Shown: piece after piece, positions 1-16,100 of the stretch
Layout: each line of letters begins with the position of its first letter
Position numbering within the stretch: position 1 is the stretch's first letter
IMG/VR virus record: IMGVR_UViG_3300029945_000001
Coordinates: 1 to 64,000 of that record
Length of the DNA: 64,000 bases
Strand: one strand, 5' to 3'
Made by a program: the position numbers and the translations under genes
The notes under the pieces: model-generated
What the model was told of the DNA's origin: nothing
What the model saw: only the letters and a program-made list of their open reading frames with translations
The model's database searches: none

Positions 1-3000
1 AGTTCCACGAATATCATTAATAACAGGATCTACTGATAAATAAGATTTAATAGCAACCTTACCAGAATCAGGAGTACATTCAGATAATACACCAACGCCG
101 TCTTCTGGATATGTTCTATCATCGACCATAAATGATTGAGCAGTTCTACCACCCTGCCCGGCATAAGTAACCGTTAACTTATCTTGAATTTCATGAATAG
201 GATTAATTTCATCAAATAACTGAACAGACTGATCATTAAGAATTTCATAAAAAACAGCATCTGGATTAATAGAGAATGATTTTTTATTAACTCGTTGATT
301 TCTATAAGTAGCATAACTACGAGCCATATGGTTATAAAGAACAGTTACCAATCTCTCATATCCACGAGTTCTTAGATTTCTCATAGAAGATGTCTGAATA
401 GCATAATCGTAAGATAACATTTCAGTTGCTTTAACCAATAAATTAAAGAAGTCTGTAGGCATATTCATCTTCTTTAAAGTATCTCTTGTAATAGTATCAA
501 TAAAGAAATCAAAGTTATCAGTAATACCTTTTAGATAGTTAACCTTTTCTCCATTATCTAACAACATAACGTAATAGGCATCTTTCTCATTTAAGTCTTT
601 TAATTCAAAGTTAGAAGTATTGTATTTTAAGAGTCCTGAAACAATTAAAGACTTTTCAATAGGATATCGATCAAACACTAAATATCCATCACTAAAGGGA
701 ACAATAATAGATGATAACTTATCTTTAGGAATATCTCTCTTTTCAGTATAAAAAGTATAGTCTATTTTAAGTTGTTTAAGAACTTGTGTAAGTCCATACT
801 GAAAGCCCATAATAAAAATAATAGGAAAGTTCTTATCTAGGATCTTTAATTCAGTCCACTCATGTACTACTTTAGGTAATGGCATTTTTCCTTTAAATTC
901 TGATACTAATATGTCAAGTATACAAGAGGAGTTTACTTCTGTATTTGTCTTCAAATCTATTTCATGAATAACATTATCAAAACCAAAGAATAATAAATTC
1001 TTATTTTTCATGCCGCAACAAACACCATACTTTTTCTCTAATGGAATGACTTTGTCTTTCTCTAGAATCTTTTTAACAAAATCAAATCTTTCTGTAAGAT
1101 CAAAGAATAACTGATAATTTGTTGTGATGAGTTGACTAAACTTATCAGCAACACATGTATATTCATACGGAAGTTTAGTAGGTGATTTCAATGCACCATA
1201 AACAATAGTTAGTCCTATTTTACTCTTATAAATATTGGCAATATAATTCTGAATAAATATTCTAAAACTATGAACCTTATGTTTATTTCTTTCAACAATA
1301 GTTTTGTTATAGTTAGAAGCTAGTGAAACTCTATTAGGAGCCACTTTACATATAGGAACATTAACTTCTTGTTTAATCATTCTCGACTTAATACCATTTG
1401 CTAACATAATACCATCATCACTTACTATTGGAAGTTTAAAGACAACTTTGTGTTTCTTACCTTCCATATCTTCATATGTAAACTTAAATCTCTTTACTCT
1501 ATTGATTCTAGAGATTTCTTCACTCTCTTCGATATCAGTTAAGAACAACCCAACACTATGAAAATGTAATGCAACATTAGCAATATCTTTATATAAATTT
1601 TCATTTATGTAATGTTCATCTAATTTAATAGCAGATGAAGATAACATAGATTCATCAAGTACATGATCCTTTAAGAAATTTAATTTATTTTTACTTATAG
1701 CAACATCTGGAGTTGCATCAATATGTTCAGATAATGATTTATTATTTAGTTTAACACCTTTATAAATCTGAGCAACTCTTTTTAATCTCTTTTGCTGAGC
1801 TTCAGAAAGATTAGGATAATTATTAATATAATCAACTGCTTGATTGTCGATGATAGAAGAAGGAATATTATCACTTAATTCTTGAACTTCAATATCTTTA
1901 CCTTGTACTTTAATAGCATTACGAATAATAACAAGATAGTGATTATACTTAATAGTTTTTTCTTTGTCTTTTGAAACAGGTATAAGCCAGGTATACCAGC
2001 GTTCTAGCGCATGTAAGTTTAAATATCTAATTCCAGTTTCTGATGTTAGGACATCATCTTCGCTATTCAGAATAATCTTCTTTATAGTCTTTTCACCAAA
2101 GAAAATTTCAAACCGATTTGCTTTAATAAAAGTATCTTTAGAAAGTGAATTATTTGATCTCTTCTCTTTTAATAAATGTTCTATAAACTTAATAAATTTT
2201 TCACTTTCATCACTGGAATGAATATCAAGATCGTTTGTAGTATCGATAAGGTTATGCATAACCATAGCACCACTAGAGCATATTACTAGCTTCTCTAAAC
2301 TATCTTTATTAAATATTTTCATCTTCTTAATAATATCTACTCTTGTCATAGGTTTATTTGTTAATAAATCTAATTCATCATCGTCTTCAATATCAATTAT
2401 TTGTTGTTCGTCTTGATTTTCTTCTTTTAATGTTTCTAATTCAGTCAAGTTATCAATATCTATCAATTTAATAAGTTTGTTAGTATTTGCTTTTAAACTA
2501 CTAACATTTTGATCTTTAGGAATATCATTTTTATCTTCATCTGTTATTTCTGTATGTTCTGTAATATCATTATCTTCAGTATCGTCATCTTCTCTACCTT
2601 GAGTTTCAACAATCTTATCGTAGCCATGTTCGTCTAAGTTATCAGTATCTATATTCATATGTCCGGCTAATTGTAGATTTGTAATATGTTTCATAACACT
2701 TAGCATCATTGATGTATCTTTAACTTTATCAAACATATGTCTCATATCACCAAGATTATAAATAATGGCTTTATCACCAGCTGTTAAAATAATATTTGTT
2801 CTGTCTAATTCTGGTACTGTCAATTCATTAAATAAAGAAGTAGCATTAACAAATTCATCTTTTTCTTTTACTCTAGAAACAAAGTTAAATAAGTGGATTA
2901 AGAAGTAATAGGTAAAGTCTTTACAATTCTTGAATTTAAGATTTTGATAATTAATTTCTTTCATAGTTGTTGTAAATGAAGATCTCTTATAAATGATAGA

Positions 3001-3594
3001 AGAAATCGGAATATGAATATAGTGAAGTTTGTGATCAATCTTAACAGTTGTATCTAAGATAGTTTTTAAAATAGCTTCAAATGTTCTATATCCTTGTAGT
3101 TTTCCACCAATAGGTTGTGCTGTTGTAATAGCATTATAATTAACAATAGGAAGAACATTACTTTTATTGAGCATAGATGCTAACATACTTGATCTTTTAA
3201 CATTATGATGTTTCTTAAAGAAGTTTTGAATCTCTGATGTAAAAGATTGAGGTCTATACTTTAAGTTATCATCAATAAAGAATCTAGACTCTTTTTCTGG
3301 TAAAGCTAACTGATTCCATAAATAAAGAGTAAATTTCTCATTTTTAATAAATGTATCATTTAGATCTGGAGATATGGTTAAGTGTTTATTCTGTAAAAAT
3401 TGGTCAACGACATGATAAACTGAATTATTAGGAAGTTGTAAGTTTTCAACTCTAACTAATAAGTTAGGAATATTAGATCTTTTCCATGTTGTATATTTAG
3501 TTTTAAACTGTTGAAAAACAAATTTTTCAAGAGCAGCTTCTTCATTGAAAGTTACAATACCACCATCCTCTGTTTGAAATGTATATGGCTCCAT
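1..3594 (-). CDS. rpoB: Virion RNA polymerase beta subunit, N-terminal part (phiKZ gp178-like); runs off the left edge
   Basis: Not in the ORF track. I translated both ends by hand and they share a frame. ATG at 3594 with AGGA RBS gives MEPYTFQTEDGG. The left edge reads DEINPIHEIQDKLTVTYAGQGGRTAQSF...VLSECTPDSGKVAIKSYL, matching the beta NP..GPGG..ETPEG region. Position near the beta'N and gp181-like genes fits phiKZ. Confidence 0.88.
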   Translation of the reverse strand, partial: MEPYTFQTEDGGIVTFNEEAALEKFVFQQFKTKYTTWKRSNIPNLLVRVENLQLPNNSVYHVVDQFLQNKHLTISPDLNDTFIKNEKFTLYLWNQLALPEKESRFFIDDNLKYRPQSFTSEIQNFFKKHHNVKRSSMLASMLNKSNVLPIVNYNAITTAQPIGGKLQGYRTFEAILKTILDTTVKIDHKLHYIHIPISSIIYKRSSFTTTMKEINYQNLKFKNCKDFTYYFLIHLFNFVSRVKEKDEFVNATSLFNELTVPELDRTNIILTAGDKAIIYNLGDMRHMFDKVKDTSMMLSVMKHITNLQLAGHMNIDTDNLDEHGYDKIVETQGREDDDTEDNDITEHTEITDEDKNDIPKDQNVSSLKANTNKLIKLIDIDNLTELETLKEENQDEQQIIDIEDDDELDLLTNKPMTRVDIIKKMKIFNKDSLEKLVICSSGAMVMHNLIDTTNDLDIHSSDESEKFIKFIEHLLKEKRSNNSLSKDTFIKANRFEIFFGEKTIKKIILNSEDDVLTSETGIRYLNLHALERWYTWLIPVSKDKEKTIKYNHYLVIIRNAIKVQGKDIEVQELSDNIPSSIIDNQAVDYINNYPNLSEAQQKRLKRVAQIYKGVKLNNKSLSEHIDATPDVAISKNKLNFLKDHVLDESMLSSSAIKLDEHYINENLYKDIANVALHFHSVGLFLTDIEESEEISRINRVKRFKFTYEDMEGKKHKVVFKLPIVSDDGIMLANGIKSRMIKQEVNVPICKVAPNRVSLASNYNKTIVERNKHKVHSFRIFIQNYIANIYKSKIGLTIVYGALKSPTKLPYEYTCVADKFSQLITTNYQLFFDLTERFDFVKKILEKDKVIPLEKKYGVCCGMKNKNLLFFGFDNVIHEIDLKTNTEVNSSCILDILVSEFKGKMPLPKVVHEWTELKILDKNFPIIFIMGFQYGLTQVLKQLKIDYTFYTEKRDIPKDKLSSIIVPFSDGYLVFDRYPIEKSLIVSGLLKYNTSNFELKDLNEKDAYYVMLLDNGEKVNYLKGITDNFDFFIDTITRDTLKKMNMPTDFFNLLVKATEMLSYDYAIQTSSMRNLRTRGYERLVTVLYNHMARSYATYRNQRVNKKSFSINPDAVFYEILNDQSVQLFDEINPIHEIQDKLTVTYAGQGGRTAQSFMVDDRTYPEDGVGVLSECTPDSGKVAIKSYLSVDPVINDIRGT

Positions 3595-3730
3595 TACAAC
3601 ATCCTATTTTGTAGTTCTAAATTATGGTAAATTTTATTAAATCAAAATTTCTTTAATATAAGTTAAAAATCTTTAAAGATTATATATTTTATGGTTTACT
3701 TTAGGCCTTTTCTACTGAAAGGATCTAGAT

Positions 3731-3871
3731 ATGGATACTTTTGATATTCTATTTATAATTAGTTTTATTATATGTTTTATAATCTTTTTATCTTTTGTCT
3801 TTAAACTACCAAAAGAAAAATCATTGTCAACAAAATATACTCAAATTAAAAATGTTAAATACTTTTTCTGA
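3731..3871 (+). CDS. Small membrane protein, 46 aa (MDTFDILFIISFIICFIIFLSFVFKLPKEK...)
   Basis: Hand-translated. AAAGGA RBS, one hydrophobic helix then a basic tail; stop lies just before a palindrome. Confidence 0.55.
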   Translation: MDTFDILFIISFIICFIIFLSFVFKLPKEKSLSTKYTQIKNVKYFF

Positions 3872-3875
3872 TCAT

Positions 3876-3907
3876 AACTACAGTAGGGCATATGCCCTAC
3901 TGTAGTT
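3876..3907. terminator. Perfect 32-bp palindrome AACTACAGTAGGGCAT|ATGCCCTACTGTAGTT
   Basis: Exact inverted repeat immediately after a stop codon. Confidence 0.75.
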
Positions 3908-3923
3908 TAAATCTATTGAAATA

Positions 3924-3931
3924 TATATTAC
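3924..3931 (+). promoter_or_regulatory. phiKZ-type early (vRNAP) promoter core TATATTAC
   Basis: Context AAATATATATTACTATATTG; the same context recurs at 4705, 30823, 47581 and 53241, each upstream of a gene. Confidence 0.7.
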
Positions 3932-3984
3932 TATATTGACTTAAGGATGCATTAAGTATCCATTCTCTTTTGCTGAGGTTTACC

Positions 3985-4350
3985 ATGACTTATTTTCCTC
4001 TTGTTGTTGCTAGATTCTTTACGATCACTCTTGACAAGGATGTTCTCGAACATACCAAGACTTACGAACATGAAAAAGAGACATACGAGTTCATCGTGAA
4101 GTGGACTGGCCTGACTCCGACCTGGAAAGTCGTCGCGCAGTTTAACTGCTTGATCAGAAATCTTGGAGGTTGGGCTCCCCTGACTTTCCTGTCGCTGATC
4201 GGCTTATCAGTCGAATATGGGTTTAACTCCAAGCTGTTCCTGGCGGCCCCCGTGGCGCTTAGTTTCGATCTGGTGGTGCTTCTTACCAGCATTATCCAGA
4301 AACTGAGCAATCCCATTTTTGGGCTTCTTTATAAGGAGGAACATATCTGA
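3985..4350 (+). CDS. Early hypothetical membrane protein (~121 aa)
   Basis: GAGGT RBS before ATG 3985; two C-terminal hydrophobic segments; GC-richer codons than core genes. Confidence 0.7.
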   Translation: MTYFPLVVARFFTITLDKDVLEHTKTYEHEKETYEFIVKWTGLTPTWKVVAQFNCLIRNLGGWAPLTFLSLIGLSVEYGFNSKLFLAAPVALSFDLVVLLTSIIQKLSNPIFGLLYKEEHI

Positions 4351-4357
4351 AAGGGAT

Positions 4358-4639
4358 ATGAACATGGACGAAAGCAATCTTGTTCCAAAACTGAGGTTCG
4401 AGTTCAATCTACTGATCCTGATGAGAGATAAAGATATACATGAAAATCAGGAACGGATGATCGGACTTCAGAACATTCTCATGAAATCTACTGCTTTTCC
4501 GAATAGCAGTGATGGCATCGTCTTCAAGGAGAACATCATTTCGGAAAACGAGCGCGAGTTCATTCTTGATATCATCGTCAAGAACACGCAGTTCAAGCTA
4601 TATAGAAAGATGGGACTAGTTTCTGTTGTGTTTATATAA
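4358..4639 (+). CDS. Early hypothetical protein (~93 aa)
   Basis: AAGGGA RBS before ATG 4358; followed by a hairpin. Confidence 0.6.
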   Translation: MNMDESNLVPKLRFEFNLLILMRDKDIHENQERMIGLQNILMKSTAFPNSSDGIVFKENIISENEREFILDIIVKNTQFKLYRKMGLVSVVFI

Positions 4640-4650
4640 GTGGAAACTAT

Positions 4651-4675
4651 GGGGGAGAGCATCATGCTCTCCCCC
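4651..4675 (+). terminator. Hairpin GGGGGAGAGCAT-C-ATGCTCTCCCCC with downstream T-rich tract
   Basis: 12-bp arms; T-rich sequence follows. Confidence 0.75.
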
Positions 4676-4704
4676 TTAATATCTTTTCTTTTTTATTTGA
4701 GATA

Positions 4705-4712
4705 TATATTAC
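4705..4712 (+). promoter_or_regulatory. Early promoter core TATATTAC
   Basis: AGATATATATTACTTATTTG upstream of the ORF at 4760. Confidence 0.65.
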
Positions 4713-4759
4713 TTATTTGAAAGTTTTAACCCTATCTAATGTATGATTAGGAGAGAGAA

Positions 4760-4861
4760 ATGAAGGCCGATAAAGCAAATCTCGAAGGTGTTGTTTATCT
4801 CGCCTTCGCTATGTTCGGAATGATAGTAATCATGGTGCTCGCATATACTCCGGCACAATGA
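4760..4861 (+). CDS. 33-aa single-helix membrane peptide (MKADKANLEGVVYLAFAMFGMIVIMVLAYTPAQ)
   Basis: Hand-translated. AGGAG RBS, own promoter, ends before a palindrome. Confidence 0.6.
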   Translation: MKADKANLEGVVYLAFAMFGMIVIMVLAYTPAQ

Positions 4862-4870
4862 TCATTAACT

Positions 4871-4900
4871 CTAGGGTGAGTTCATATGAACTCACCCTAG
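4871..4900. terminator. Perfect 30-bp palindrome CTAGGGTGAGTTCAT|ATGAACTCACCCTAG
   Basis: Exact inverted repeat. Confidence 0.7.
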
Positions 4901-4918
4901 TATGTGGAGAATAATCAC

Positions 4919-5044
4919 GTGGCAAAAATATTTCTTTGTAAGAAACATGGATGTGGGCACGAACTAACCAGTATTAAAGATAACGAAGTCTGTGACTGGT
5001 GTGGCTCGCCCATGGAGAAAATTGCTGCAATATTCGGCGTGTGA
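4919..5044 (+). CDS. 41-aa zinc-ribbon protein (MAKIFLCKKHGCGHELTSIKDNEVCDWCGSPMEKIAAIFGV)
   Basis: Hand-translated. GGAG RBS, GTG start, Cx4C...CxxC pattern. Confidence 0.65.
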   Translation: MAKIFLCKKHGCGHELTSIKDNEVCDWCGSPMEKIAAIFGV

Positions 5045-5047
5045 ATA

Positions 5048-5079
5048 AGAGAGGGAGTGGCATATGCCACTCCCTCTCT
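5048..5079. terminator. Perfect 32-bp palindrome AGAGAGGGAGTGGCAT|ATGCCACTCCCTCTCT, between convergent genes
   Basis: Exact inverted repeat; T-tract follows on the + strand. Confidence 0.75.
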
Positions 5080-5094
5080 CACCTTTTATTTTTT

Positions 5095-5370
5095 CTATAA
5101 ATCAAGATGTTCTGATAGAGTACAATATCCAATACTTTCATTAGTAACATTTCTTCTAATATTAACAAGTTCGCAACAATTATTATTTATAACAGTTTGT
5201 CCATCATACATAATAATTTCATCATTACAATATTTTTTAATATTTGTAATAATCACCATAGCATTAGGGACGTGATTTTTAAAAATAGGATCATTGATCT
5301 GACACATTGTAACGTCACCAATTTTCAAAGACTTTGAAAAAGTTTGTATTTGTGACATTTCAAATGACAT
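5095..5370 (-). CDS. Hypothetical protein, last gene of the radical SAM operon
   Basis: Starts 6 nt after the rSAM stop; 5 Cys; ends at a terminator. Confidence 0.6.
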   Translation of the reverse strand: MSFEMSQIQTFSKSLKIGDVTMCQINDPIFKNHVPNAMVIITNIKKYCNDEIIMYDGQTVINNNCCELVNIRRNVTNESIGYCTLSEHLDL

Positions 5371-5376
5371 CCTATT

Positions 5377-6672
5377 TTAGACTGGGAGTTTAAATTTATC
5401 TACAGAAAGGCCAAAAATGTTTTTTCTACTTTCTGGCAAAGTATCAGAACATATATAAAGAGGTACATAACCAGTTTGTGATTCAAATGCAACAGCAAAT
5501 AAAGGAATAAGATTTGTATAAGACATTTCGCAGGATGAAGCAAATAACTCATCTTGAATAAAGAAACAACTTCCTCTACATGTAGATAACACAGGACAAT
5601 CTTTACAATTCTCTCGTCTAGACCAATGTGTACCAGTATTTAATTTTACTTCATCGAGTTTTGTAATATCACCGATTTTATGAGATTCACCATTCTGAGC
5701 TATGGTATTAGCAGATGTATTTTGACATGTCAATATATCCCCATTCATATTAACAACGAGAACATTTTCTGCATCTAAACCACAACCTTGTGGATCATTA
5801 ACATGACTTTCAACATTAAAATGGGAAGTCATAACATTTTTTTGATTTGGTAATCTATCAAATAAACCAGGATTTTGTTTAAACTCTAACCAGTTATATA
5901 GACGTAAACTTTGCATTTCTTCATGAGTGAAATTAATCGAATCTTTACTATCATCAGAATAAGCAACAACATATCCCATTTCCGAGAAATTGATGATATC
6001 TCTCTTAGGAAATTTATTCATAAAGAATTCAATAATTTTTGATCTAGAGTAATTTTGTTTATTAAGAACAGATCCGAAACAGAATCTACCTTTGAATTTT
6101 TCCAAAATATAGTCGATAACTTCATAGTTAGTATCTAATGGATCATCACCACGGACGTGTTGTCCAGGGCCATCGTGAGACATAGACATGGTAAATCCAT
6201 TATCAAATAGAAAGTCAGCAATTTCTTTTGTAAGAAGACTACCATTAGTAATAATACCAAAATTAGTTTTTGGCATAAGCGGTCTTAGTTTTTCAATAAG
6301 AGGTTTTAATTTTTTCCAATAAACTAATGGTTCTCCGCCCCAAAACTGTAATTTCCTAATACCACTTAAATCTACATTATCTATTAATTTATTAACAAAT
6401 TCATCAACATCGTACTTATCTTTTGTTTCAGAGTGCGCTAAGAATTTCTGAGAACAATAACTACAATTGAAATTACAAGAAATGCCGAGCTGAATTTTCA
6501 TGAAATAAGGAGTTCTTGATTTCTTACACGGAGTTTCTTTAGATACACTAAACGGAACTATAACTTCTGTAGATTCAATTTCCTTAGCTGAAATTCTATT
6601 CGTAAGACTATCAAAATAAAAATACTTTTGTTCTTCAGTTTCCCAATCTTCACAAAGAATTTTATAAATCAT
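5377..6672 (-). CDS. Radical SAM enzyme with SPASM domain (peptide/protein maturase class)
   Basis: CNFNCSYC (CxxxCxxC), FWGGEPL, ITNGSLL, SHDG. SPASM cysteines CGLD..VNMNGDILTC and CKDCPVLSTCRGSC...C. GAGGAG RBS favours ATG 6672 over 6711. Confidence 0.92.
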   Translation of the reverse strand: MIYKILCEDWETEEQKYFYFDSLTNRISAKEIESTEVIVPFSVSKETPCKKSRTPYFMKIQLGISCNFNCSYCSQKFLAHSETKDKYDVDEFVNKLIDNVDLSGIRKLQFWGGEPLVYWKKLKPLIEKLRPLMPKTNFGIITNGSLLTKEIADFLFDNGFTMSMSHDGPGQHVRGDDPLDTNYEVIDYILEKFKGRFCFGSVLNKQNYSRSKIIEFFMNKFPKRDIINFSEMGYVVAYSDDSKDSINFTHEEMQSLRLYNWLEFKQNPGLFDRLPNQKNVMTSHFNVESHVNDPQGCGLDAENVLVVNMNGDILTCQNTSANTIAQNGESHKIGDITKLDEVKLNTGTHWSRRENCKDCPVLSTCRGSCFFIQDELFASSCEMSYTNLIPLFAVAFESQTGYVPLYICSDTLPESRKNIFGLSVDKFKLPV

Positions 6673-6688
6673 TGTACTTTTCTCCTCA

Positions 6689-7216
6689 TCAGTCACCGGA
6701 ACCGGCACCATTAGACAAGTCTACGATCGAACAATTACAGTTACAATTGTATTGACAATTACAATTACAATTACAATCGGCTTGTATACCAGTTGTATGA
6801 CTATAAGCACACTGGTTTGTACCCATTGGAGTACAAGCACAATTACATTGTACCATATCCTCATTATAAATCCAATTTAAACCATCATAACAAGCATCGT
6901 AAGTAATAACAATTCCGCATTGAGAACCATCAAGTTTATAATAATTAGGACTACTAAAATTACACACAGATTCTTGCACACACTGTCCAGTAGAAGCACA
7001 ATTTGTTGTAGTAGAAGTCGCTGTTCTTGTAATACTATTTTGAGAAGAAACAGGAGTAAAATAATTATATCCTCTTAAAGATTGTAACCCGTTTGCCATT
7101 CCATAAGGAGTATTTGCTTTAATAGTTGCCATACTCAATGTAGCATTAGAAGCGTTACCCATTAATACATCTATATCAGAAAAATTAATAGCACCAGATG
7201 TAGGAATATTTGTCAT
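6689..7216 (-). CDS. Cys-rich protein with (CN)n tail; putative radical SAM substrate
   Basis: 16 Cys, all in the C-terminal ~100 aa, ending DCNCNCNCQYNCNCNC; N-terminal IPTSGAINFSDI motif; directly upstream of the rSAM gene. Confidence 0.75.
   Translation of the reverse strand: MTNIPTSGAINFSDIDVLMGNASNATLSMATIKANTPYGMANGLQSLRGYNYFTPVSSQNSITRTATSTTTNCASTGQCVQESVCNFSSPNYYKLDGSQCGIVITYDACYDGLNWIYNEDMVQCNCACTPMGTNQCAYSHTTGIQADCNCNCNCQYNCNCNCSIVDLSNGAGSGD
6731..6775. repeat. ACAATT hexamer tandem repeat encoding Cys-Asn
   Basis: acaattacagttacaattgtattgacaattacaattacaattaca. Confidence 0.8.
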
Positions 7217-7509
7217 TGTTGATTACTCGTCAAATAAAGTAACAGATCATTTATGTCTGTACTGCCAGTTTCTATTCTTAATTTAATAAGATCTATGATT
7301 TCTCCTGTTGTATCAGATTTAATTTGTGTAGCAAGTTCTGTGGCATAAGTCGTTAACGTATCATTAAAAAATCCATAAATATCTTGTTCTGTTAATATAG
7401 TAGTTTCTATAGTACTTTTACCTGTTGTATCAGCAGCAACTAATTTAGTTTTATAGGCAGTAATAGCTGTTGTTATCTGATCATTTGTAAAACTGGACGC
7501 AATGGGCAT
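7213..7509 (-). CDS. 98-aa Thr-rich hypothetical protein, first gene of the rSAM operon
   Basis: AGGAG/AAGGA RBS; ATGA overlap with the Cys-rich gene. Confidence 0.7.
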   Translation of the reverse strand: MPIASSFTNDQITTAITAYKTKLVAADTTGKSTIETTILTEQDIYGFFNDTLTTYATELATQIKSDTTGEIIDLIKLRIETGSTDINDLLLYLTSNQQ

Positions 7510-7526: not shown

Positions 7527-9194
7527 TTAGAAAGGTCTTGAGACAGCTAATGCAAAATAATCAATACCATTTGTCTGTGCACCAATTAATAGTTGTTTCT
7601 GACTATTAATAACGGAAGCAATACTATTTAAATAATTTAAGTTTTCTATATTTGCTGTATCTGACATCATTATGTTTCCAGAAGTCATATCGCCATCATA
7701 ATCAGCATCAAGACCGGGTGCTCTTAATGCCGCAATAGTACAAGAATTATTAATAGGATTATCTAGGACAGGATATTGATTATATATCTTTCTTAAATTA
7801 CCAGAAATAGCTGATCTCAGTTTTATGATACGACCAGGTGTCGTTGAAACCAAATGTATTTTACTGGGATAACAGGATTCATTCTGAATAACAGGATATC
7901 TAGTATTAAACATTGTCTTTTCGATACCGTTATGAATAGCACTGAATGTTGACAAATAGAAAAGTTCTAACCAGGTTAAAGGTCTAATATATTCTTTTTT
8001 GATCTGTCTATTAAAAACATTTTTAAAGTCATTCATACCACGGAATAATGTAATTTCATCTCCTGTATCATATACCATAAACAGATAATATTCTTTATTA
8101 TTTTTATCTCTAATACTAACAGGACGTTTAGCAAAGTGAGGATTTTTAAATTTAGAAATAAGATCGCCAATAGCTTCATTTGTATTAAACTTAGCAAGTT
8201 CCTGATCAGTTACTTCCGTATATTCTAGATTTAATGTCGATTTATTTGTTAATAGAATTTTATTATTACCTCTTTGTCCAAATATAAAATCAAAGAATGC
8301 TACTCTAACCCAATGAACAACAGCCGGTTGTAAACCTTTAGCTGCTTGTAATACACCAATCTTCGTTTCATCTGGTTTTATAACTTGTAAATCATTTGGT
8401 GTCATACATTGATATGAAGCACCCGTAATAACATTACGAGTTCCCCATGTAATCTTACGTTGTGCCCAAACACCATTAATAAATCCTTTTTTACCATCAA
8501 CGATATTGTAAATATATTCATAAATTTCAACCATCTTCTTTTGTAAATTTAATCTTACTGTATCGAACACAGCAGATTGCGCATTTTCCAATGAAGATAA
8601 TGCTAATCCTAAGGATAAAGCGGATGAATAAATCTTATTAATATCATCTTGAGAAATACGCTGTTGATCTTCTTCGATATCTCGTAAACCGGCAGGAAGT
8701 ACTAATAAATATTTTGTAAATAAATTACCTTCTTTCTTATATTTTTCAATATCTTTAATGCGATCTTCTCTAGCTCTAGATTCAGTTAATTTAAATTCTA
8801 TTTTAGGAAGATACTTCATAAAGAAAGAGTAACCAGTACCGGCATCTATTGTTGTTTCAGGAGTTGGACACTTTTTAAAATCATTGATAGTATTATCAAA
8901 GATTGCATATTCTGTACCATTAATAATATTCTCATAAAGAGATCCTAATTTTATAATATTTTTATAAATGAGAGGTTGTAAAATATAAGTATGCATATCT
9001 ATATACCCAAAACTAACTAATCTTTTTGTATCACCGATCATTCCAAAAATCTGTTCTGAGAAAAAACCTTCTGAGTGAAATGATGTACTCGACGGTTCAT
9101 AAATGGCATGCGACGTTATTGGTAAACAACCATTTTCTTTAATATATTGCTCTGGATTAATAAGCCAAATATTTAATGCATTTTCGACTATCAT
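7527..9194 (-). CDS. rpoC: Virion RNA polymerase beta' subunit N/middle part (phiKZ gp180-like)
   Basis: GFFSEQIFG, FGYIDM, VLPAGLRD, GKKGFI, NTRYP and the catalytic LDADYDGDM. RBS favours ATG 9194 (track start 9227). Confidence 0.93.
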   Translation of the reverse strand: MIVENALNIWLINPEQYIKENGCLPITSHAIYEPSSTSFHSEGFFSEQIFGMIGDTKRLVSFGYIDMHTYILQPLIYKNIIKLGSLYENIINGTEYAIFDNTINDFKKCPTPETTIDAGTGYSFFMKYLPKIEFKLTESRAREDRIKDIEKYKKEGNLFTKYLLVLPAGLRDIEEDQQRISQDDINKIYSSALSLGLALSSLENAQSAVFDTVRLNLQKKMVEIYEYIYNIVDGKKGFINGVWAQRKITWGTRNVITGASYQCMTPNDLQVIKPDETKIGVLQAAKGLQPAVVHWVRVAFFDFIFGQRGNNKILLTNKSTLNLEYTEVTDQELAKFNTNEAIGDLISKFKNPHFAKRPVSIRDKNNKEYYLFMVYDTGDEITLFRGMNDFKNVFNRQIKKEYIRPLTWLELFYLSTFSAIHNGIEKTMFNTRYPVIQNESCYPSKIHLVSTTPGRIIKLRSAISGNLRKIYNQYPVLDNPINNSCTIAALRAPGLDADYDGDMTSGNIMMSDTANIENLNYLNSIASVINSQKQLLIGAQTNGIDYFALAVSRPF

Positions 9195-9262
9195 ATTTTT
9201 CCTTTCATTATATATATTAGGATTCATAATATCGTGTAATAAGTTAAATATTATTTATATTA

Positions 9263-9309: not shown

Positions 9310-10185
9310 ATGGACCAGACAGTTAGGTATTCCGATGAATTGCGAGATAAGATTTTTAATAAATCATTTACTGATGAAGATATTGAAAAAATAAAAGCTA
9401 TTAAACAAGATAAAGATGCATTAGATAAATTTTCAGAGAAGATGATTACTGGCGGATTGATTACTCCAGATAATATCTATATCGATTTACAATATTTTAA
9501 AGATTTAAAATTAGGATCATTGATGTCTCTTTTGTATAAAGAGTCAAAGATAAACGACGTTTCTGAAAAGTTTAATAAAATTAAATTAAACATGCAAAAA
9601 TATACTGAAAGAAAAACGGACGATCTTTCTAAGTATTTTGATATTGGATATACTAATGATGATATTGATAATCACCTAAACGATCCTCAGTATTCTGATG
9701 AAATATTTATGTTATCTCCAGCTACAGCATTTATTCATGTATTATCATGTCAGACTCAAGTTAATGTTAATCATTCTGCTGTTATAGGAAAAAGAGATGT
9801 TATTACATTTACTGTTAATACTTATCCACTTAACTTGGGCAATACACCAAAACGTCTTCTTGGAGATTTTATCAATAGTGTCTATTATTGTAATTGTAAT
9901 GTAATTTATAAATCCCCTTCTGATATAGCTAAGACAATAAAAGATTATGATGAATTATACTTATTCAATCTTGATAAACTAAGTCAGATTGATTTATTTC
10001 AAAAACAATTTTCAGAATTAACTTTCTTAGGAAAACGTATTTTTGCTCCTGCATTATTTAAAGATGAACATTCTTATAAAATTGAAGAAAGTCAAGTAAA
10101 TGGATGGTTGAATTTAGGATGTGATTTTACATATGTTAGATCTGAACAGTTTTCTCCTGGTGTAGAAAAGGACAATAAGAAATGA
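9310..10185 (+). CDS. Hypothetical protein
   Basis: 291-aa ORF with AAGGA RBS; ATGA overlap with the gp181-like gene. Confidence 0.75.
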   Translation: MDQTVRYSDELRDKIFNKSFTDEDIEKIKAIKQDKDALDKFSEKMITGGLITPDNIYIDLQYFKDLKLGSLMSLLYKESKINDVSEKFNKIKLNMQKYTERKTDDLSKYFDIGYTNDDIDNHLNDPQYSDEIFMLSPATAFIHVLSCQTQVNVNHSAVIGKRDVITFTVNTYPLNLGNTPKRLLGDFINSVYYCNCNVIYKSPSDIAKTIKDYDELYLFNLDKLSQIDLFQKQFSELTFLGKRIFAPALFKDEHSYKIEESQVNGWLNLGCDFTYVRSEQFSPGVEKDNKK

Positions 10186-13100
10186 CAGACAGTATTTTTA
10201 ATGGATTAGGATTATCAGATTTAAAATCTATAGACAATTCATCTCCTCCTAGTATTCAGAAAGAACAAATTAAAGATATAAATACTCCAGTCAAATCTCC
10301 TACAACAAATATCATTGATGGATTAGATTTAGAAAGCGATAAATTAGATAACGTTATGAGTAAGATCAATAATACTTTTAAAACAAAGAATAGAGTGAAA
10401 GAATTAAGTATAGATTTGCATTCTATAGATTCTAATGCTTCTTTACAAAATACATCAGATTTACATTCATATATTCTAGATCGTAAAAAGATCGCTACTA
10501 ATTTAAATACAGCATTTAAAGGTTCTGTTAGTAAAGCTGTTTCTGGAGATAATGAAAAAACTAAAAATACTGGAGCTACTGTTAAAGGTGAGTTTGATCT
10601 TGCTATTAATACAATCATAAATGAAAAGATTTTACTAAATGGATTTACAACATTAAACAGAATTAATATAAATCAATTACAAGTCTTGAAGAACATAAAT
10701 AAATTTAATACATCTATCTTTACAAACTATCTCTCACAGAGCTTATCATTACAATACAAACAGACCGCATTGACCAAAGATTTATTAAATGTTACAAGAG
10801 CAGTTGGGGCTATCATTGAAGGTAAGTTAGATGCCATCAAAATAAATACTTCATTGTCTATACCTAAAAAAGAATCGATGATTGATCATATCAAAGGAAG
10901 TATCAAGAAATCTTTTTATGATAAAATAGGAAGGACTGTTATAGATACTGGATATGACCTTGGAAAAAAGCATCTATTTGATCCTACACTAACAGCAGTT
11001 AAAGATATTAGTTCTGGTAGAAAATCTGTAAAACAAGTTAAAGATGAATTATCTGCACATATGAAAAAACAATATGATCATTATTCTAAAAAAACTATAG
11101 ATCTTAAAAGACACAGCTTTGATGTAGCTAGAAGAAATGGTGGAAAAAGAACAGAGAACGTCCTTGATTTCTTAGATGATTCTGGTTCATATGTTAAAAA
11201 TAAATCGATGGCAGCATACTCATTCACTTTAGATAAATTACATGAATTTAATGAAAGTGATTTTAAGAAAGATATCATAAATAAATATGATACGACATCT
11301 AGACGTATTGGTGTAAATGCTAGAAATTATAAACGCAAATTTGACCATCTTCATCTTAAAGATCATATTGAAGAATTCATGTCAGATATGACTCCAGATA
11401 TGATTAAGAGATTGGCGAATGATAAGAAATTAAGAGATAGATATTTTAGAGCTAAAAAGAAACATATTCAAGATTTTATTAATAAGAATAAAACTGATTT
11501 AGGTGCTCATTATAGAGAAGTTGAAAAATCTTTAAAAGACAAAGTTACATGTTTTGAACAGTATGTAGATTCAAATGAATTTGTACATAAAAATCAAGTT
11601 AGATATAAAGCTTTAAAGCGCAAGATAAAAAGAACTGATTTCAAGAAAGAAATTACAAATAGTAAAAAATCAATTGGAAATAGATTAACAAATATTAAAA
11701 ATAGTATTTTTGATGATAATGATATTCATGATGATATTACTGAAGATTATGTTAATTCTTCACATTCTAATAAATCTCATATCGCCAATGACGATATTGA
11801 AATTCTTAAGTTATATATTAATGAAATTAATAACTACAATAGAACAGGATCTGGTAAGATTCCGAGTGATGTTAAGAAACTAGCTAATGAATTAGGACTC
11901 ATAAAGAAACAGTCTGTTAAGAATAAGGTTAGAAATCTTTCAAGTAGATATATTCCAAAAGCAGCTTCTAAATCAGAGTTTACAAGAATTACTAAAAATG
12001 TTAGATCTACAACTACGAATAGTTATAACACAGCAAAAGATAAAGTACGAGATACATACAACTCTATTACTGAAGATGGTGTTTTAAATAAGATTAGTAA
12101 ATTAAAATCTGGAATAGGAAATAAGATTCCATTATCTGAAGAAACACGAGATAAGATTTTAAGTTATCTTCCTGAAATTAATGCGCTTGCTGCTGGTAAG
12201 AAAATAGCCGGTGTTCCATTAGATGTTTTAGAGATTTGTGGAGAAGCTGGTATTCTCCCAAGCAAAATTGTTTCGGTCGCTAGATTGGCTGATAAAGCAG
12301 TTGATAAAGGATACTTGCATCATAGTGCTAAAGGTGTCACAAAGAGAGTTCTCAAAGGACAACTTGCTTATGGTACTGGTGGTTTGGGTGGTAGTTCTGA
12401 AGGAAATGGAATATATGGTGGTGGAGTCAATATAGATTTAAATCCGCTTAAAGAATCTATTGATAGTTTTCACCAATCATTTAGAACATTCAGTGCCGCA
12501 TCGTTAAAAGTTTTTAAATCTATGCAGACTGGTAGTGGTGCCACAGGGAATGGTTCTGGTAGCATAAATACTGTTCAAGAAAAAACTCGTATGCAAAAAA
12601 TTATGGGTAAACTTAAATTCTGGAAAAAAGATAATACACCCAATAATAAACCTGAAGAGATTGGAGATATTCATAAATTATTTAAAGCTGCTACTACGGT
12701 TGTTGGCGGGTCTGCTTCTGTCTATGGAAAATATTTAAAGTTTATGGGACATATTCCTGCCTTTGGTACAAAGGTATTGTTTGGAAAACATGAAAATGAT
12801 CCATTTGTTGATGTTTATAGGAAAGATCAGAGAGATGCAGGACATCCTCTTGTTACCAAAAAACAATTAGAAAAAGGATGCTATTTTAAAGATGGTAATC
12901 CTGTTAGAAATGTCTCTTATATTAAAGAACCTATTTTTGATAAGAAAGGTAATATGCTTGTTAGTGAAGAAGATATTAAAGCTGGATTAGTGGATATTAG
13001 AGGAAAGAATATAGCGAATCGTAAATTTACAATATCTCGATTTGGTAAAATGGCGGATATTACTGGTATGCTAGGAAGTAAAGCATTAGGTATTACTGGA

Positions 13101-16100
13101 TCTTTAGCTAAAGTTTATGGTCATACTTTACTTGGTTTAGGAAAGGCTGGTTTTGGTGCTGCTAAATTCTTAGGTGGAAAAGCTGTTGATTTATTAAACG
13201 GAGATGCTGTCAAGACATTAACAAAAGGCGGTGTTGGTTTAGCTGGTGTTCTTGGTAAGATGTATGGTGGTATGTTTGGTATGGGTTTAAAAGGATTGGG
13301 TGGTGCCGGTAAATTTGGAACTGGGTTATTGGGAAATATGTTAGGATTTAATAAAGGTGGTGGAAATAAGAAGGATCTTGAAGAAATAGTTGGTAGAAGA
13401 CTAGATACTATTATTGGTATTCTACATGGTAGTCATATACCAGTTCCTCCAAATTCTGGAAGAAATAGATTTAATAGAGTTGTTGGTGGAATGCATAATG
13501 TTGCTAATTTAAATAAAACAGTTAGAAATAAACTCAATGCAGTTATGAGAACAACTAGTCAATTAAGACCTAGAGCAGAATCACATATAGAACAGAATGC
13601 TGATAGACATCCAGCTCTTATGAATATTGTTAGTGCTAATAGTCTTAATCACTATGCTAATATGCAACATACTCCCGCTAATAATGTTGATCATGATAAT
13701 AATGATGAGCATCACGATAGTACAGCAGAGACACTTATCGAATTGGCTATTGGAAATTATTTAAAAGATAAAGCTATAAAAGGTGGTAAATATGTATTTG
13801 GTAAAACTGCTACTGGTGCAAAGTTTATTGGAAAAGGAGTTGGTAAAGGCGTAAGCCTTGCTGCAAAAGGAGTTGGTGCTTCTGCTAAAGTTGCCGGTAA
13901 AGGAGCTATGATTGTTGGTAAAGGTGCTGCAAAAGGAACATCTGCTGTGGTAAAAGGTGTTATTAATGTATTAGGAAAAACTAAGTATGGTAGGATGGTA
14001 TCAGCTGCTGCATTAACGGCAGGTGCTGGCTATGCTGCTTATAAAGGTATGAATAGAGCTGATACGAGAGCCAAAGAAGATCAGCGTAGTCTTTATGGAT
14101 CTGCTGGCGGTGCAGCACGAAATGCTGTTGCTACAGATGCTGCGGTTTATGGTGCTGCTGCTGTTGGTAGTAAACTTATTTCTAAAGCTGCTGGCAAACT
14201 CGGTATTGACATTGGTGCAAAATTAGCTGCTAGAGCTGGTGCTAAGCTTATTCCTGGTGTTGGTCTTGTACTAGGGACGGCTTCTGCTGTCATGCGGGCA
14301 CGGCGAGGCGATTATCTTGGTTCTGTATTAGAATTTGCAAGCGGTCTTGTTTCAACTGTTCCTTTCGTTGGTACTGCTATATCGGTTGGTATTGATGGTT
14401 ATTTAGCATATAGAGATTATAATAATTCTTATAAAGTTGCTGATCATTCACAGAAGTTTATTACAAAAGATCGTGTTACTGCATATGGCTTTGATGTGAG
14501 ATATAAAGAGGATGTTTTACAACTAGAACACGATGTTCATGTTGCTATGTCTGAAAAAGGAGCTAAAGTAACTAAAAGTAGATTAAGTTCTTTTGCTAAA
14601 CTGTTTGGACTACCTGATCTATCGAAAGATCCTATTGCATATAAATATTTCTTACTGTGGTATAATAATAGATTTGTTAATATCTTTTCAAGATACTGTG
14701 CTATTCTAAAATCATTTGGTTTACAGTATTCAGTACAAGACGAAGTAGATAAAAACACTATGAATAAAGTTATACCTGAGTTTCAAAAACAAACTGCTAA
14801 TATTGTTAATCAACATAAATCACTTGTATTATCTAAATCTGCGTTTGATAAATATAAAGCCGACTATGAAAAAAGTGAAAAAGATAAACAACAAAAAGAT
14901 AAAGATAAATTACATCCTAAAACTGTACCAAATACTACAACAGATAATAAAGATAATAGTAATTTAAAAGTATTAACGGCTCTAGAAGTTAGTAAACTTA
15001 AAACAACACAAGTAAATAAGATATCACCAGAACATTTTCCTGATAAAAATAGTAATAGTAATAGTAATAGTAATAAGTCTACTAAAAAAGTCGTAGCTAG
15101 TCATGTCATGACACCAGCCGAAGTTATTGCAAATAGATCAAATAAACTTCATGAAGATTCTCCAAGAGGATTCGATAGAGCAACTAAAACTGTTAAAGAA
15201 AATAATCCTAGAGATATTGCTAAGTTTAATAAGAAAGTTGTTGAAACTTCTGTTGATCAATCTAGTACGGTTTCTAAATATGTAAAAGCTAAAGATGATG
15301 AATATGGTCCTCATATGCCTTCTGGTCCTGCAAATGACAATTCAAAAACTGTTGTTGGTAATGATAATACTGCATTAATAAGTAAAGCCAAAACAGCAGT
15401 TGCTGCTCCTTCTACTCCGTCAAGTCCGGACAGTCTTGGTTCATTAAGTGCTAAATTTGAATCTTCTGCAAAAGGGTCTTCTGCTGTTGGTTATGATAAA
15501 GTTGGTGGAACGTCATATGGTAAGTATCAGATAGCGTCTGCGGTTGGTACATTTAGTGCGTTTATTAAGTTCTTAAAATCTCAACCTGGTAATGGTCCTA
15601 TTGTTGCACAGCGATTAGAATCTGCTGGTCGTGCTAATACTGGATCTAAATCCGGTACTGTTCCTGACGAATGGAAAAAAATTGTTAGTGAAGGATTAAT
15701 GAGTGATTATGAGCATGCATTCATTAAGAAAACTATATATGATAAAGCTCTTGATAAAATAAAAGGAAAAGCTAGAGAATACGTCGATAAATTTAAAGCA
15801 GTACAACAAGTATTGTGGTCAACTGCTGTTGGTAGTGGTGCCGGTGGCGCAGCAAATATATTTAATTCTGTTGGTGAAAAAGCACAAAATGTTTCAGAAT
15901 TTATTAAAGCTGTTTATGAAAAACGTAGTACTAAATATGGTAGTTCTACTGCTGGTGTACAAGCAAGTATGGTAAATAGATTTAAGGATGAATCTAAACT
16001 AGCACTTGGTATGATTGGTGGAGAGGGTGATAGTACTATGCAAGTTGCTAGTGCATCGACTCCTTCTGCTCCTACGACAGATACAAAACAGGCACCCGCT

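Follow-up and report, generated by a model that had tools for sequence, protein, structure and literature searches.

Why should a small protein of a jumbo phage end in an alternating run of cysteine and asparagine, and why is a radical-SAM enzyme encoded directly behind it? The protein in question, here called P0001, is encoded on the minus strand at 6689-7216 of a 64,000-nucleotide stretch of the IMG/VR record IMGVR_UViG_3300029945_000001, which as a whole is referred to as the window. It had attracted attention in a sequence-only reading, which described a Cys-free N-terminal module, considered a leader or virion-docking part, followed by a Cys-rich C-terminal part, considered a modified or metal-binding core. 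It further proposed that the number of modified sites might change by slippage of a hexamer repeat. What had been observed in the sequence proved to be correct. The interpretation is only partly supported, as detailed below.

The open reading frame encodes 175 amino acids. Residues 1-72 lack Cys, while residues 73-162 contain 16 of them; if 16 Cys were placed at random in 175 positions, the first 72 would remain empty with p = 1.2e-4. Thirteen of the 16 Cys are preceded by N (8), Q (4) or D (1). The Cys-free module (7001-7216, minus strand) carries the N-terminal PTSGAINFSDI motif, which is real and conserved: the family consensus is MTLPASGAISFSDINTEVG, and the family motif reads MTLPxSGxISxSDxNxExG. 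The Cys/Asn-rich core (residues 73-146; 6779-7000, minus strand) contains 9 Cys, including the mini-run QCNCAC (123-128) and a conserved block, NQCAYSH...IQA, that precedes the terminal tag. The tag itself, D-CNCNCNC-QY-NCNCNC (residues 147-162; 6731-6778, minus strand), ends DCNCNCNCQYNCNCNC. It is encoded by an array of TGT-AAT hexamers, which Tandem Repeats Finder reports on the plus strand as ACAATT x 7.8 at 6731-6777. The tag is followed by a tail of 13 residues, SIVDLSNGAGSGD (6692-6730, minus strand); homologues have 0-18 residues at this place, or a Hint or Peptidase_S74 domain. P0001 is the only ORF with such a tag in the 208-kb genome.

P0001 is not an orphan. DNA and protein searches of a phage collection with the locus and with P0001 found nothing, and Pfam, PHROGs and NCBIfam did not match P0001 or its N module; Pfam searches with 26 isolated N modules of the family yielded only noise, and a word-based search with the N module of one family member (P0085) returned only itself. 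The protein belongs, however, to a hitherto unannotated viral family of 112 clusters at 50% identity, whose members have a folded Cys-free N module, a Cys/Asn-rich core and a terminal N-(C-x)n-C tag. The bipartite layout holds for the whole family: in 97 of 101 members of at least 110 aa, the first Cys lies at residue 45-80.

The N-terminal part is a separate module. With 62 aligned sequences, AF2 predicts a small folded domain for residues 1-55 (helices 12-18, 29-34 and 44-47; strand 50-53) with a pLDDT of 86-92, whereas the Cys core stays below 50; a model built from only 6 sequences was unusable (pLDDT 35). One family member has a Gly_rich_2 domain inserted between the N module and the Cys core. 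A mere leader is unlikely for a confidently folded domain of 55 residues in proteins that can reach 376 aa. Virion docking is plausible, yet rests only on synteny and on weak structural leads that connect the N module to GP38 (gp38-type adhesins), Gly_rich_2 and Laminin_G_3 viral clusters. The fold matches are not significant: BFVD gave E>0.3 for the gp38 rows, a wide PDB search found no match with Z>=2, and the Atlas matches had a TM of 0.3-0.59.

The neighbouring gene (5377-6711, minus strand) encodes a radical SAM/SPASM enzyme, P0004, of 444 aa as the longest ORF. Its true start is probably M14 at 6672, about 17 nt after the stop of P0001, as inferred from alignments of homologues. The Radical_SAM domain is evident (PF04055, 51 bits against a cut-off of 29.5; also phrog_1802). 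The CX3CX2C cluster motif (C79, C83, C86; 6454-6477, minus strand) and the seven Cys of the SPASM region (C310, C329, C369, C372, C378, C382 and C394, with the pattern CX2CX5CX3C...C; 5530-5784, minus strand) are invariant in 24-26 members of the clade, which predicts two auxiliary Fe-S clusters. Its best NCBIfam matches are the Cys-directed maturases PapB, geopeptide, CcpM, QhpD and anSME, and the best PDB matches are TvgB, anSME and CteB. All 61 NCBIfam hits, however, score far below their curated cut-offs, the best being PapB with 77 bits against 340; no characterised equivalog is thereby reached, be it PapB, QhpD, CcpM, geopeptide, SCIFF, anSME, CefB or GggB, and the chemistry cannot be transferred from any of them.

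The tag is the key feature, and its link to the enzyme emerged from both search directions. A blind DNA scan for CNCNCNC in IMG/VR returned 120 loci. In 43 of them an ORF of at least 90 aa has the tag in frame within 25 aa of its end, and 35 of these carry a radical-SAM gene of the clade (E<1e-30) on the same strand. All 26 with at least 3.5 kb of downstream DNA carry it. Of the 77 remaining loci only 3 do, and those 3 also bear tags. In the reverse direction, 238 loci in bacterial genomes, mostly Burkholderiales, encode members of the enzyme clade. Of the 59 kept loci with at least 2.5 kb upstream, 57 have a same-strand upstream ORF ending in C-x-C-x-C, or in C-x-C-x-C followed by a Hint domain, against a background of 5/2331. 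In P0001's own family, wherever DNA context of at least a few kb was available (loci L010, L050, L064, L146, L190, L148, L151, L216, L218 and L220), the clade enzyme is adjacent or within about 1-2 kb. The tag is thus associated with this enzyme across well over a hundred independent loci, and the C-terminal Cys/Asn part is very likely the modified core. Co-folding of the enzyme with P0001 gave a score of 0.16 against a mark of 0.32, which counts neither for nor against the pairing. Many loci also carry extra conserved genes between fibre and radical-SAM genes, i.e., proteins of about 300 aa and about 280 aa and a second small radical-SAM protein, which could perform the decisive step there.

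What kind of protein carries the tag? Mostly tail fibres. The tag ends gp028 of Achromobacter phage JWF, a tail-fibre-like protein with a Hint domain, and the side tail fibre of Ralstonia phage RSP15, where the minimal form is NCQCGN. Six of ten tested tagged proteins hit PHROG tail-fibre or tail families at E<=1e-6. In P0001's own family at least 19 members have Hint domains and 7 have Peptidase_S74 domains directly after the tag; P0035 and P0036 carry Peptidase_S74, and P0118, like JWF gp028, Hint, above the Pfam cut-off, in each case directly after the tag. The small-family gene sits directly downstream of S74-ended fibre genes in L050, L064, L190 and L216, and the neighbours of L218 include Phage_tail_fib and Gp53-like_C. 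The family thus belongs with phage fibre or adhesin-type proteins, although P0001 itself matches no fibre family in Pfam, PHROGs or NCBIfam and shows only the weak fold leads mentioned above.

The setting in this phage, a distant phiKZ-like jumbo phage from peat, is different. Here the genes form a cassette between two RNA polymerase subunit genes and not in the tail-fibre module, which lies at 171-175 kb and carries only a truncated radical-SAM paralogue. The upstream border is a gene for a small RNA polymerase beta-like subunit (phrog_2986; 7527-9227, minus strand), the downstream border one for a large beta-like subunit (phrog_3148; 1-3594, minus strand). The region 1-3900 might be taken as free of ORFs, but this is wrong; it is one long minus-strand RNA polymerase ORF that runs off the record. 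In related jumbo phages the large subunit gene directly follows the small one, and the cassette interrupts a gene pair that is adjacent in Xoo-sp14 and Eowyn. The cassette starts with a gene of 98 aa (7213-7509, minus strand), whose stop overlaps the start of P0001 (ATGA). A gene of about 100-130 aa sits in the same overlapping position in relatives (L002, L216 and the P0013 contig), but no homology to the window's copy was detected. Directly downstream of the enzyme gene lies an ORF of 91 aa (5095-5370, minus strand), for which no homologues were found and whose role in the module is uncertain; neither small gene had a hit in Pfam, PHROGs or NCBIfam. The distal end is a 1.5-kb stretch (3595-5094) without a convincing ORF and with a local GC of 38-44% in a genome of 31% GC. 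Metatranscriptome contigs touch P0001, the radical-SAM gene and the RNA polymerase genes, but a carry-over of DNA cannot be excluded.

Taken together, we consider it slightly more likely than not that P0001 is a small fibre- or adhesin-type structural protein whose tag, N/D-(C-N)n-C, is the substrate of the enzyme encoded immediately downstream. The pairing of tag and enzyme is shown by comparative genomics, not by biochemistry; the modification, its chemistry, the probable docking of the N module onto another tail component and the incorporation into the virion are all inferred. The enzyme most likely uses its radical-SAM cluster and two auxiliary clusters to join Cys sulfur atoms to carbon atoms of the intervening Asn, Asp or Ala residues. 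The overlapping N-x-x-C units would then give a ladder of beta-thioether bridges, and the result would be a rigid, protease- and heat-resistant, possibly inter-chain cross-linked fibre end. This chemistry is deduced from the nearest enzyme families and from the composition of the tag, where residues between Cys are N in 67%, D in 14% and A in 7%, and N precedes the first Cys in 84% of the tags. In relatives the tag is followed by a self-cleaving Hint or an S74 chaperone domain, so it would become the mature C-terminus. The inserted cassette looks like a self-contained module of substrate plus enzyme.

Among the closest precedents for such chemistry is the streptococcal RaS-RiPP system NxxcB/NxxcA. 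NxxcB, an rSAM/SPASM enzyme too, makes a beta-thioether between Cys and Asn in an NxxC motif, with the acceptor Asn two residues upstream, and tolerates Ala, Gln and Asp as acceptor (PMC9389541); the phage tag may be seen as a chain of overlapping NxxC units with N, D, A and Q at the variable positions. The phage substrate, however, is the C-terminus of structural proteins of 90-620 aa, not a short quorum-regulated peptide, the motif is iterated and overlapping, and the enzyme matches no curated equivalog. QhpD, an rSAM/SPASM enzyme which matures quinohemoprotein amine dehydrogenase, installs Cys-to-Asp/Glu thioethers in a Cys-rich protein subunit, QhpC, rather than in a released peptide. It is among the best matches (TIGR03906, E 4.6e-17), but with 62 bits against 453, and there is no dehydrogenase context; the substrate here is a fibre tag with a regular repeat. 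PapB/freyrasin and the SCIFF/CcpM-type ranthipeptide systems also comprise thioether-forming rSAM/SPASM maturases and substrates with repeated Cys motifs, and the PapB match spans residues 73-384. Yet no leader/core peptide, protease or exporter is present here, the motif is C-x-C instead of CX3D, and the targets are virion-type proteins. The anaerobic sulfatase-maturating enzyme, anSME, is likewise an rSAM/SPASM enzyme; it modifies a Cys in a full-length folded protein, gives a full-length PDB match (4k36-4k39) and has lent its name to the annotation of JWF gp030; but it scores 55 bits against 349, and neither a sulfatase nor its target motif C/S-x-P/A-x-R is found. On the side of the substrate, the needle of the T4 long tail fibre, gp37, has HxH iron sites, i.e., an alternating motif near the distal end of a fibre, and gp38-type adhesins are small proteins encoded right after a fibre gene. 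The analogy has its limits, since the phage motif uses Cys/Asn instead of His and depends on a dedicated enzyme, and no significant sequence or fold match was found. From the fibres and spikes with C-terminal S74 or Hint domains, finally, P0001 differs by having neither domain, and the tag and its enzyme are additions not described for such fibres.

Of the alternatives, a metal site survives best, though we consider it unlikely. In a trimeric fibre the alternating pattern would put all thiols on one face of a beta-strand, from where they would point to the axis and coordinate Fe, Zn, Cu or Fe-S clusters in analogy to gp37, while the enzyme would do something else, such as oxidation of Cys to formylglycine as in anSME, epimerisation, or a step unrelated to the tag. 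The position of the tag at the end of fibre proteins, next to S74 trimerisation chaperones, and the ranking of anSME among the best full-length matches fit this view. The near-obligate linkage to one enzyme clade, however, argues that the tag itself is the target; a plain metal site needs no dedicated enzyme. Nor would a pure thiolate site require the strong restriction of the positions between Cys to N, D and A, or the N before the first Cys. The target motif of anSME is absent from the tag. A metallothionein-like reading was dropped as well, because the protein is rich in Tyr, Asn and Thr, has a folded N domain and is linked to an enzyme.

Still less likely is a phage-encoded RiPP precursor, in which the N module would be a leader recognised by the enzyme and the Cys-rich part would be released as a ranthipeptide- or sactipeptide-like product acting on the host or on competitors. 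Of course, the layout is leader-like, the adjacent gene is of the RiPP-maturase type, the cassette lies outside the tail module in this phage, and substrates of the QhpC, SCIFF and CcpM type are also Cys-rich. But P0001 with its 175 aa and its folded N module is no short precursor, and no protease, transporter or RRE-type domain was detected in the cassette. The same tag and enzyme clade serve tail-fibre proteins of 200-620 aa that lack the N module, so recognition cannot depend on it, and family members carry S74 or Hint domains and lie in fibre modules.

Least likely is the contingency locus implied by the slippage idea, in which slipped-strand mispairing at high frequency would vary the fibre tip: the array of 7.8 perfect to near-perfect copies is short, interrupted (CAA TAC) and of mixed codons (AAT/AAC), and although the terminal run varies between 3 and 7 Cys among homologues and differs even between related fibres, the tag is identical in three IMG/VR contigs of this phage (two fetched by protein homology, one from the pattern scan), in the 99%-identical protein P0002 and in contigs from three further peat samples, albeit Logan contigs drop rare variants and low-frequency variation is not excluded.

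Literature searches on radical SAM or SPASM enzymes in connection with tail fibres, Hint domains or thioethers, on the CNCNCNC motif and on the phages JWF and RP15 returned no description of this module. Tentatively, and with less confidence than in the reading given above, one may think of a dedicated clade of rSAM/SPASM enzymes that cross-links the tag of phage and prophage tail fibres within a chain or between the three chains of the fibre. To our knowledge, this would be the first radical-enzyme modification of a virion structural protein and a portable two-gene module for hardening fibre tips, spread through freshwater and soil Burkholderiales prophages, siphophages, Ackermannviridae-like phages and jumbo phages.

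If the pairing is real, it would define a very short, transferable tag (minimal form N-C-x-C) with a single cognate enzyme, which could serve as a protein-stapling tool, and recombinant expression of such fibres without the enzyme may give immature protein. It would explain the orphan genes annotated as "radical SAM" or "anaerobic sulfatase maturase" in the tail modules of cultured phages such as JWF and RSP15. It would extend RiPP-type radical-SAM chemistry from small peptides to virion proteins, and phage tail fibres, which determine host range, would carry a previously unnoticed enzymatic modification.

The minus-strand ORF at 6689-7216 encodes a protein of 175 aa, P0001. Its first 72 residues contain no Cys, whereas residues 73-162 contain 16 of them, a split with a chance of 1.2e-4. 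Thirteen of the 16 Cys follow N, Q or D. The tail reads D-CNCNCNC-QY-NCNCNC followed by 13 residues, and it is encoded by a TGT-AAT array, which Tandem Repeats Finder reports as ACAATT x 7.8 at 6731-6777 on the + strand. Everything that the sequence-only reading had described, i.e., a Cys-free N-terminal module joined to a Cys-rich tail on hexamer repeats, is thus present where it had been placed.

The window is the first 64 kb of a 208-kb IMG/VR virus record with 32% GC and an estimated completeness of about 91%; the virus occurs in at least 18 peat metagenome runs. Its genes, which comprise split RNA polymerase (RNAP) beta-like subunits, a PF23971 tail tube, a GroEL-like protein, a DNA polymerase and topoisomerase II, identify it as a distant phiKZ-like jumbo phage. 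The GroEL-like chaperonin (32540-34408, minus strand) matches phrog_5725 at E 1.6e-21, while its Pfam Cpn60_TCP1 score is just below the cut-off. On the minus strand, the small RNAP-beta gene (7527-9227, phrog_2986) is followed by a gene of 98 aa (7213-7509), whose stop overlaps the P0001 start, by P0001 itself, by the radical SAM gene P0004 (5377-6711), by an ORF of 91 aa (5095-5370), by 1.5 kb without convincing ORFs (3595-5094) and finally by the large RNAP-beta gene (1-3594, phrog_3148). In Xanthomonas phage Xoo-sp14 and Klebsiella phage Eowyn the two RNAP genes are adjacent, being only 3-25 nt apart, but here they are split by the 3.9-kb P0001/rSAM cassette. The cassette is therefore an insertion, which fits a self-contained module. 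The ORF-poor stretch has a local GC of 38-44% in a 31% GC genome, contains no tRNAs and gave no Rfam match at gathering score and no blastn match in phages; it may be a remnant of the DNA that brought in the cassette. A protein of 2158 aa (10182-16658, plus strand) with weak tail-fibre PHROG matches is transcribed divergently from the RNAP genes, and the same giant divergent gene is conserved in Xoo-sp14 and Eowyn.

P0001 is the only ORF in the genome that carries a C-x-C-x-C tag. A truncated second copy of the rSAM is, however, found outside the window at 171555-172072 (minus strand) of the record, with neighbours at 172249-173445 and 173456-174553 (both minus strand). Two ORF fragments match P0004 residues 301-434, with 54% identity over the longer one. 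It lies directly downstream of a tail-fibre gene with an S74-like chaperone C-terminus and looks like a decayed, fibre-linked copy of the module in the phage's real fibre region, although no tagged ORF is nearby.

The partner enzyme P0004 has a Radical_SAM domain, the CX3CX2C motif and a complete seven-Cys SPASM region, and all of these Cys are invariant in 24-26 clade members. Its best curated-family matches are Cys-directed maturases: PapB, geopeptide maturase, CcpM, QhpD and anSME. All of them score far below their cut-offs, for example 77 against 340 bits. The best solved relatives are TvgB, anSME and CteB. It is therefore a distinct clade of rSAM/SPASM enzymes, whose chemistry can only be inferred. 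Alignment with homologues suggests that the true start is M14 (6672), about 17 nt after the P0001 stop.

P0001 is a member of a family. A word-based search found one distant homologue of the same layout, P0003, and a degenerate-pattern scan found a third member in the locus L010. A profile of six members, searched against 1.84 billion representatives, then yielded 112 clusters at E<=1e-3, of which 68 are at E<=1e-10. The members share a Cys-free N module with the consensus MTLPASGAISFSDINTEVG and the first Cys at a median position of 63, a Cys/Asn-rich core, and terminal C-x-C runs of 3-8 units. Of these, 79 are short like P0001, at least 19 continue directly into a Hint domain and 7 into a Peptidase_S74 intramolecular-chaperone domain; P0118, P0035 and P0036 score above the Pfam cut-offs. 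One member, P0085, has a Gly_rich_2 domain between the N module and the Cys core. A third type of extension after the tag, distinct from Hint and S74, begins ...SKIIC(A/T)KL(Y/F).. and runs for about 110-170 aa; it is seen in P0042, where it has no Pfam match, and in the loci L037 (44-934, minus strand) and L148 (3064-3750). With an alignment of 62 sequences, AF2 models residues 1-55 of P0001 confidently (pLDDT 86-92) as three short helices and a strand, while the Cys-rich part stays below pLDDT 50.

The decisive result is that the tag and the enzyme travel together. The lead came from a tblastn search with the rSAM, which found 38%-identical homologues inside the tail modules of Achromobacter phage JWF and Ralstonia phage RSP15. 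JWF gp028, a tail-fibre-like protein, carries QNCNCDCNCNCS immediately before the first Cys of a Hint domain, and the RSP15 side tail fibre ends ...SNTNCQCGN. We then scanned IMG/VR for DNA encoding CNCNCNC, which returned at least 120 loci, and searched all ORFs of the 120 retrieved with the enzyme. Of these, 43 have an ORF of at least 90 aa with the tag in frame within 25 aa of its end, and 35 of the 43 carry a clade rSAM on the same strand. All 26 with at least 3.5 kb of downstream DNA carry it. Of the 77 other loci, which are out-of-frame or non-terminal matches, only 3 carry it, and those 3 also bear tags.

In the reverse direction, a scan of one genome per prokaryotic species with the enzyme profile found 238 loci, mainly in Limnohabitans, Polynucleobacter, Burkholderia/Paraburkholderia and other Burkholderiales, plus some Rhodobacterales and Bradyrhizobium. 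Of the 59 kept loci with at least 2.5 kb upstream, 57 have a same-strand upstream ORF that ends in C-x-C-x-C or has that run followed by a Hint domain, against a background on the opposite strand of 5 of 2331 ORFs. P0001's own family shows the same link wherever context was available, that is in the loci L010, L050, L064, L146, L190, L148, L151, L216, L218 and L220.

Recurrent accessory genes lie between the tagged gene and the clade rSAM in L010 (749-2694), L216 (1775-3627) and L005 (2323-4001; RSP15 ORF047/046). They encode a protein of about 300 aa, which is 38% identical between L010 and L216 and related to RSP15 ORF047, a protein of about 280 aa that is RSP15 ORF046-like, and a second, smaller rSAM of about 340 aa. 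None of them is present in the window's cassette. A different small tagged protein of about 70-80 aa, ending ...HTH(I/L)F(F/Y)DDYST(A/N)CNCNCNC plus 7 more residues, occurs in the IMG/VR contigs L027, L126 and L038. In L027 and L126 it sits in clusters with three to five radical-SAM-like ORFs (one such ORF in the short L038 locus), and in L126 next to a Hint-domain protein; this may be a more elaborate version of the system. In Ralstonia jumbo phage RP12 (L007, 84-89 kb), three annotated radical-SAM genes and one unannotated protein with a CX3CX2C-like motif lie in a row. The third is 28% identical to P0004. No C-x-C tag was seen in the 9 kb examined.

As to the nature of the tagged proteins, six of ten tested hit PHROG tail-fibre or tail families, some at E 1e-48 to 1e-70, and others share the N-terminal part of JWF gp028. 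The small-family gene typically lies directly after a fibre gene that ends in an S74-type chaperone, with a gene of about 100-130 aa in between. Hint and S74 domains are autoprocessing, and where one of them follows the tag, this would, by inference, leave the tag as the mature C-terminus. The nearest structural neighbours of the N module are viral clusters carrying GP38 adhesin, Gly_rich_2 or Laminin_G_3 domains, but these matches are not significant. We therefore read P0001 as a small fibre or adhesin-type protein, its place in the virion being inferred.

In 97 unique tags the residues between the Cys are N (67%), D (14%) and A (7%), and N precedes the first Cys in 84%. The minimal tag is N-C-x-C. 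The repeat is thus a chain of overlapping N-x-x-C units. NxxcB, an rSAM enzyme, links Cys to the beta-carbon of Asn in an NxxC motif and tolerates Ala, Gln and Asp as acceptor (PMC9389541). PapB and QhpD make Cys-Asp/Glu thioethers, QhpD and anSME act on proteins rather than peptides, and these families are the best matches of the phage enzyme. The most economical model is that the enzyme installs a ladder of Cys-Asn/Asp thioethers in the C-terminal tag of the fibre. What our data establish is the pairing of enzyme and tag and the fibre context of the latter; the chemistry, the intra- or inter-chain character of the links and a benefit such as rigidity or stability of the tip are inferred.

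There are rival explanations. The tag could be a metal site like the HxH needle of T4 gp37, with the enzyme performing a different step; metal binding had also been proposed in the sequence-only reading and is at present a conjecture only. Alternatively, P0001 could be the precursor of a released RiPP, although the proposal that its N-terminus is a leader is not supported. Least likely is a contingency locus driven by slippage, an idea of the sequence-only reading that is not supported, since the repeat number, which does differ among homologues, is fixed within this phage as far as contigs can tell, which cannot exclude rare variants: the tag is identical in three IMG/VR contigs, in the 99%-identical protein P0002 and in contigs from three further peat samples, without any insertion or deletion. 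The earlier interpretation is thus supported in part, namely in regarding the C-terminal part as a modified core and the protein as fibre-like.

No Pfam, PHROG or NCBIfam model covers P0001 or specifically the enzyme clade, and targeted full-text searches of the literature found no description of the module. The type of enzyme is known. The substrate class, i.e., virion fibre proteins, the tag and the breadth of the module, however, appear to be new, and the finding generalises from a single peat phage to a widespread module of tag plus enzyme.
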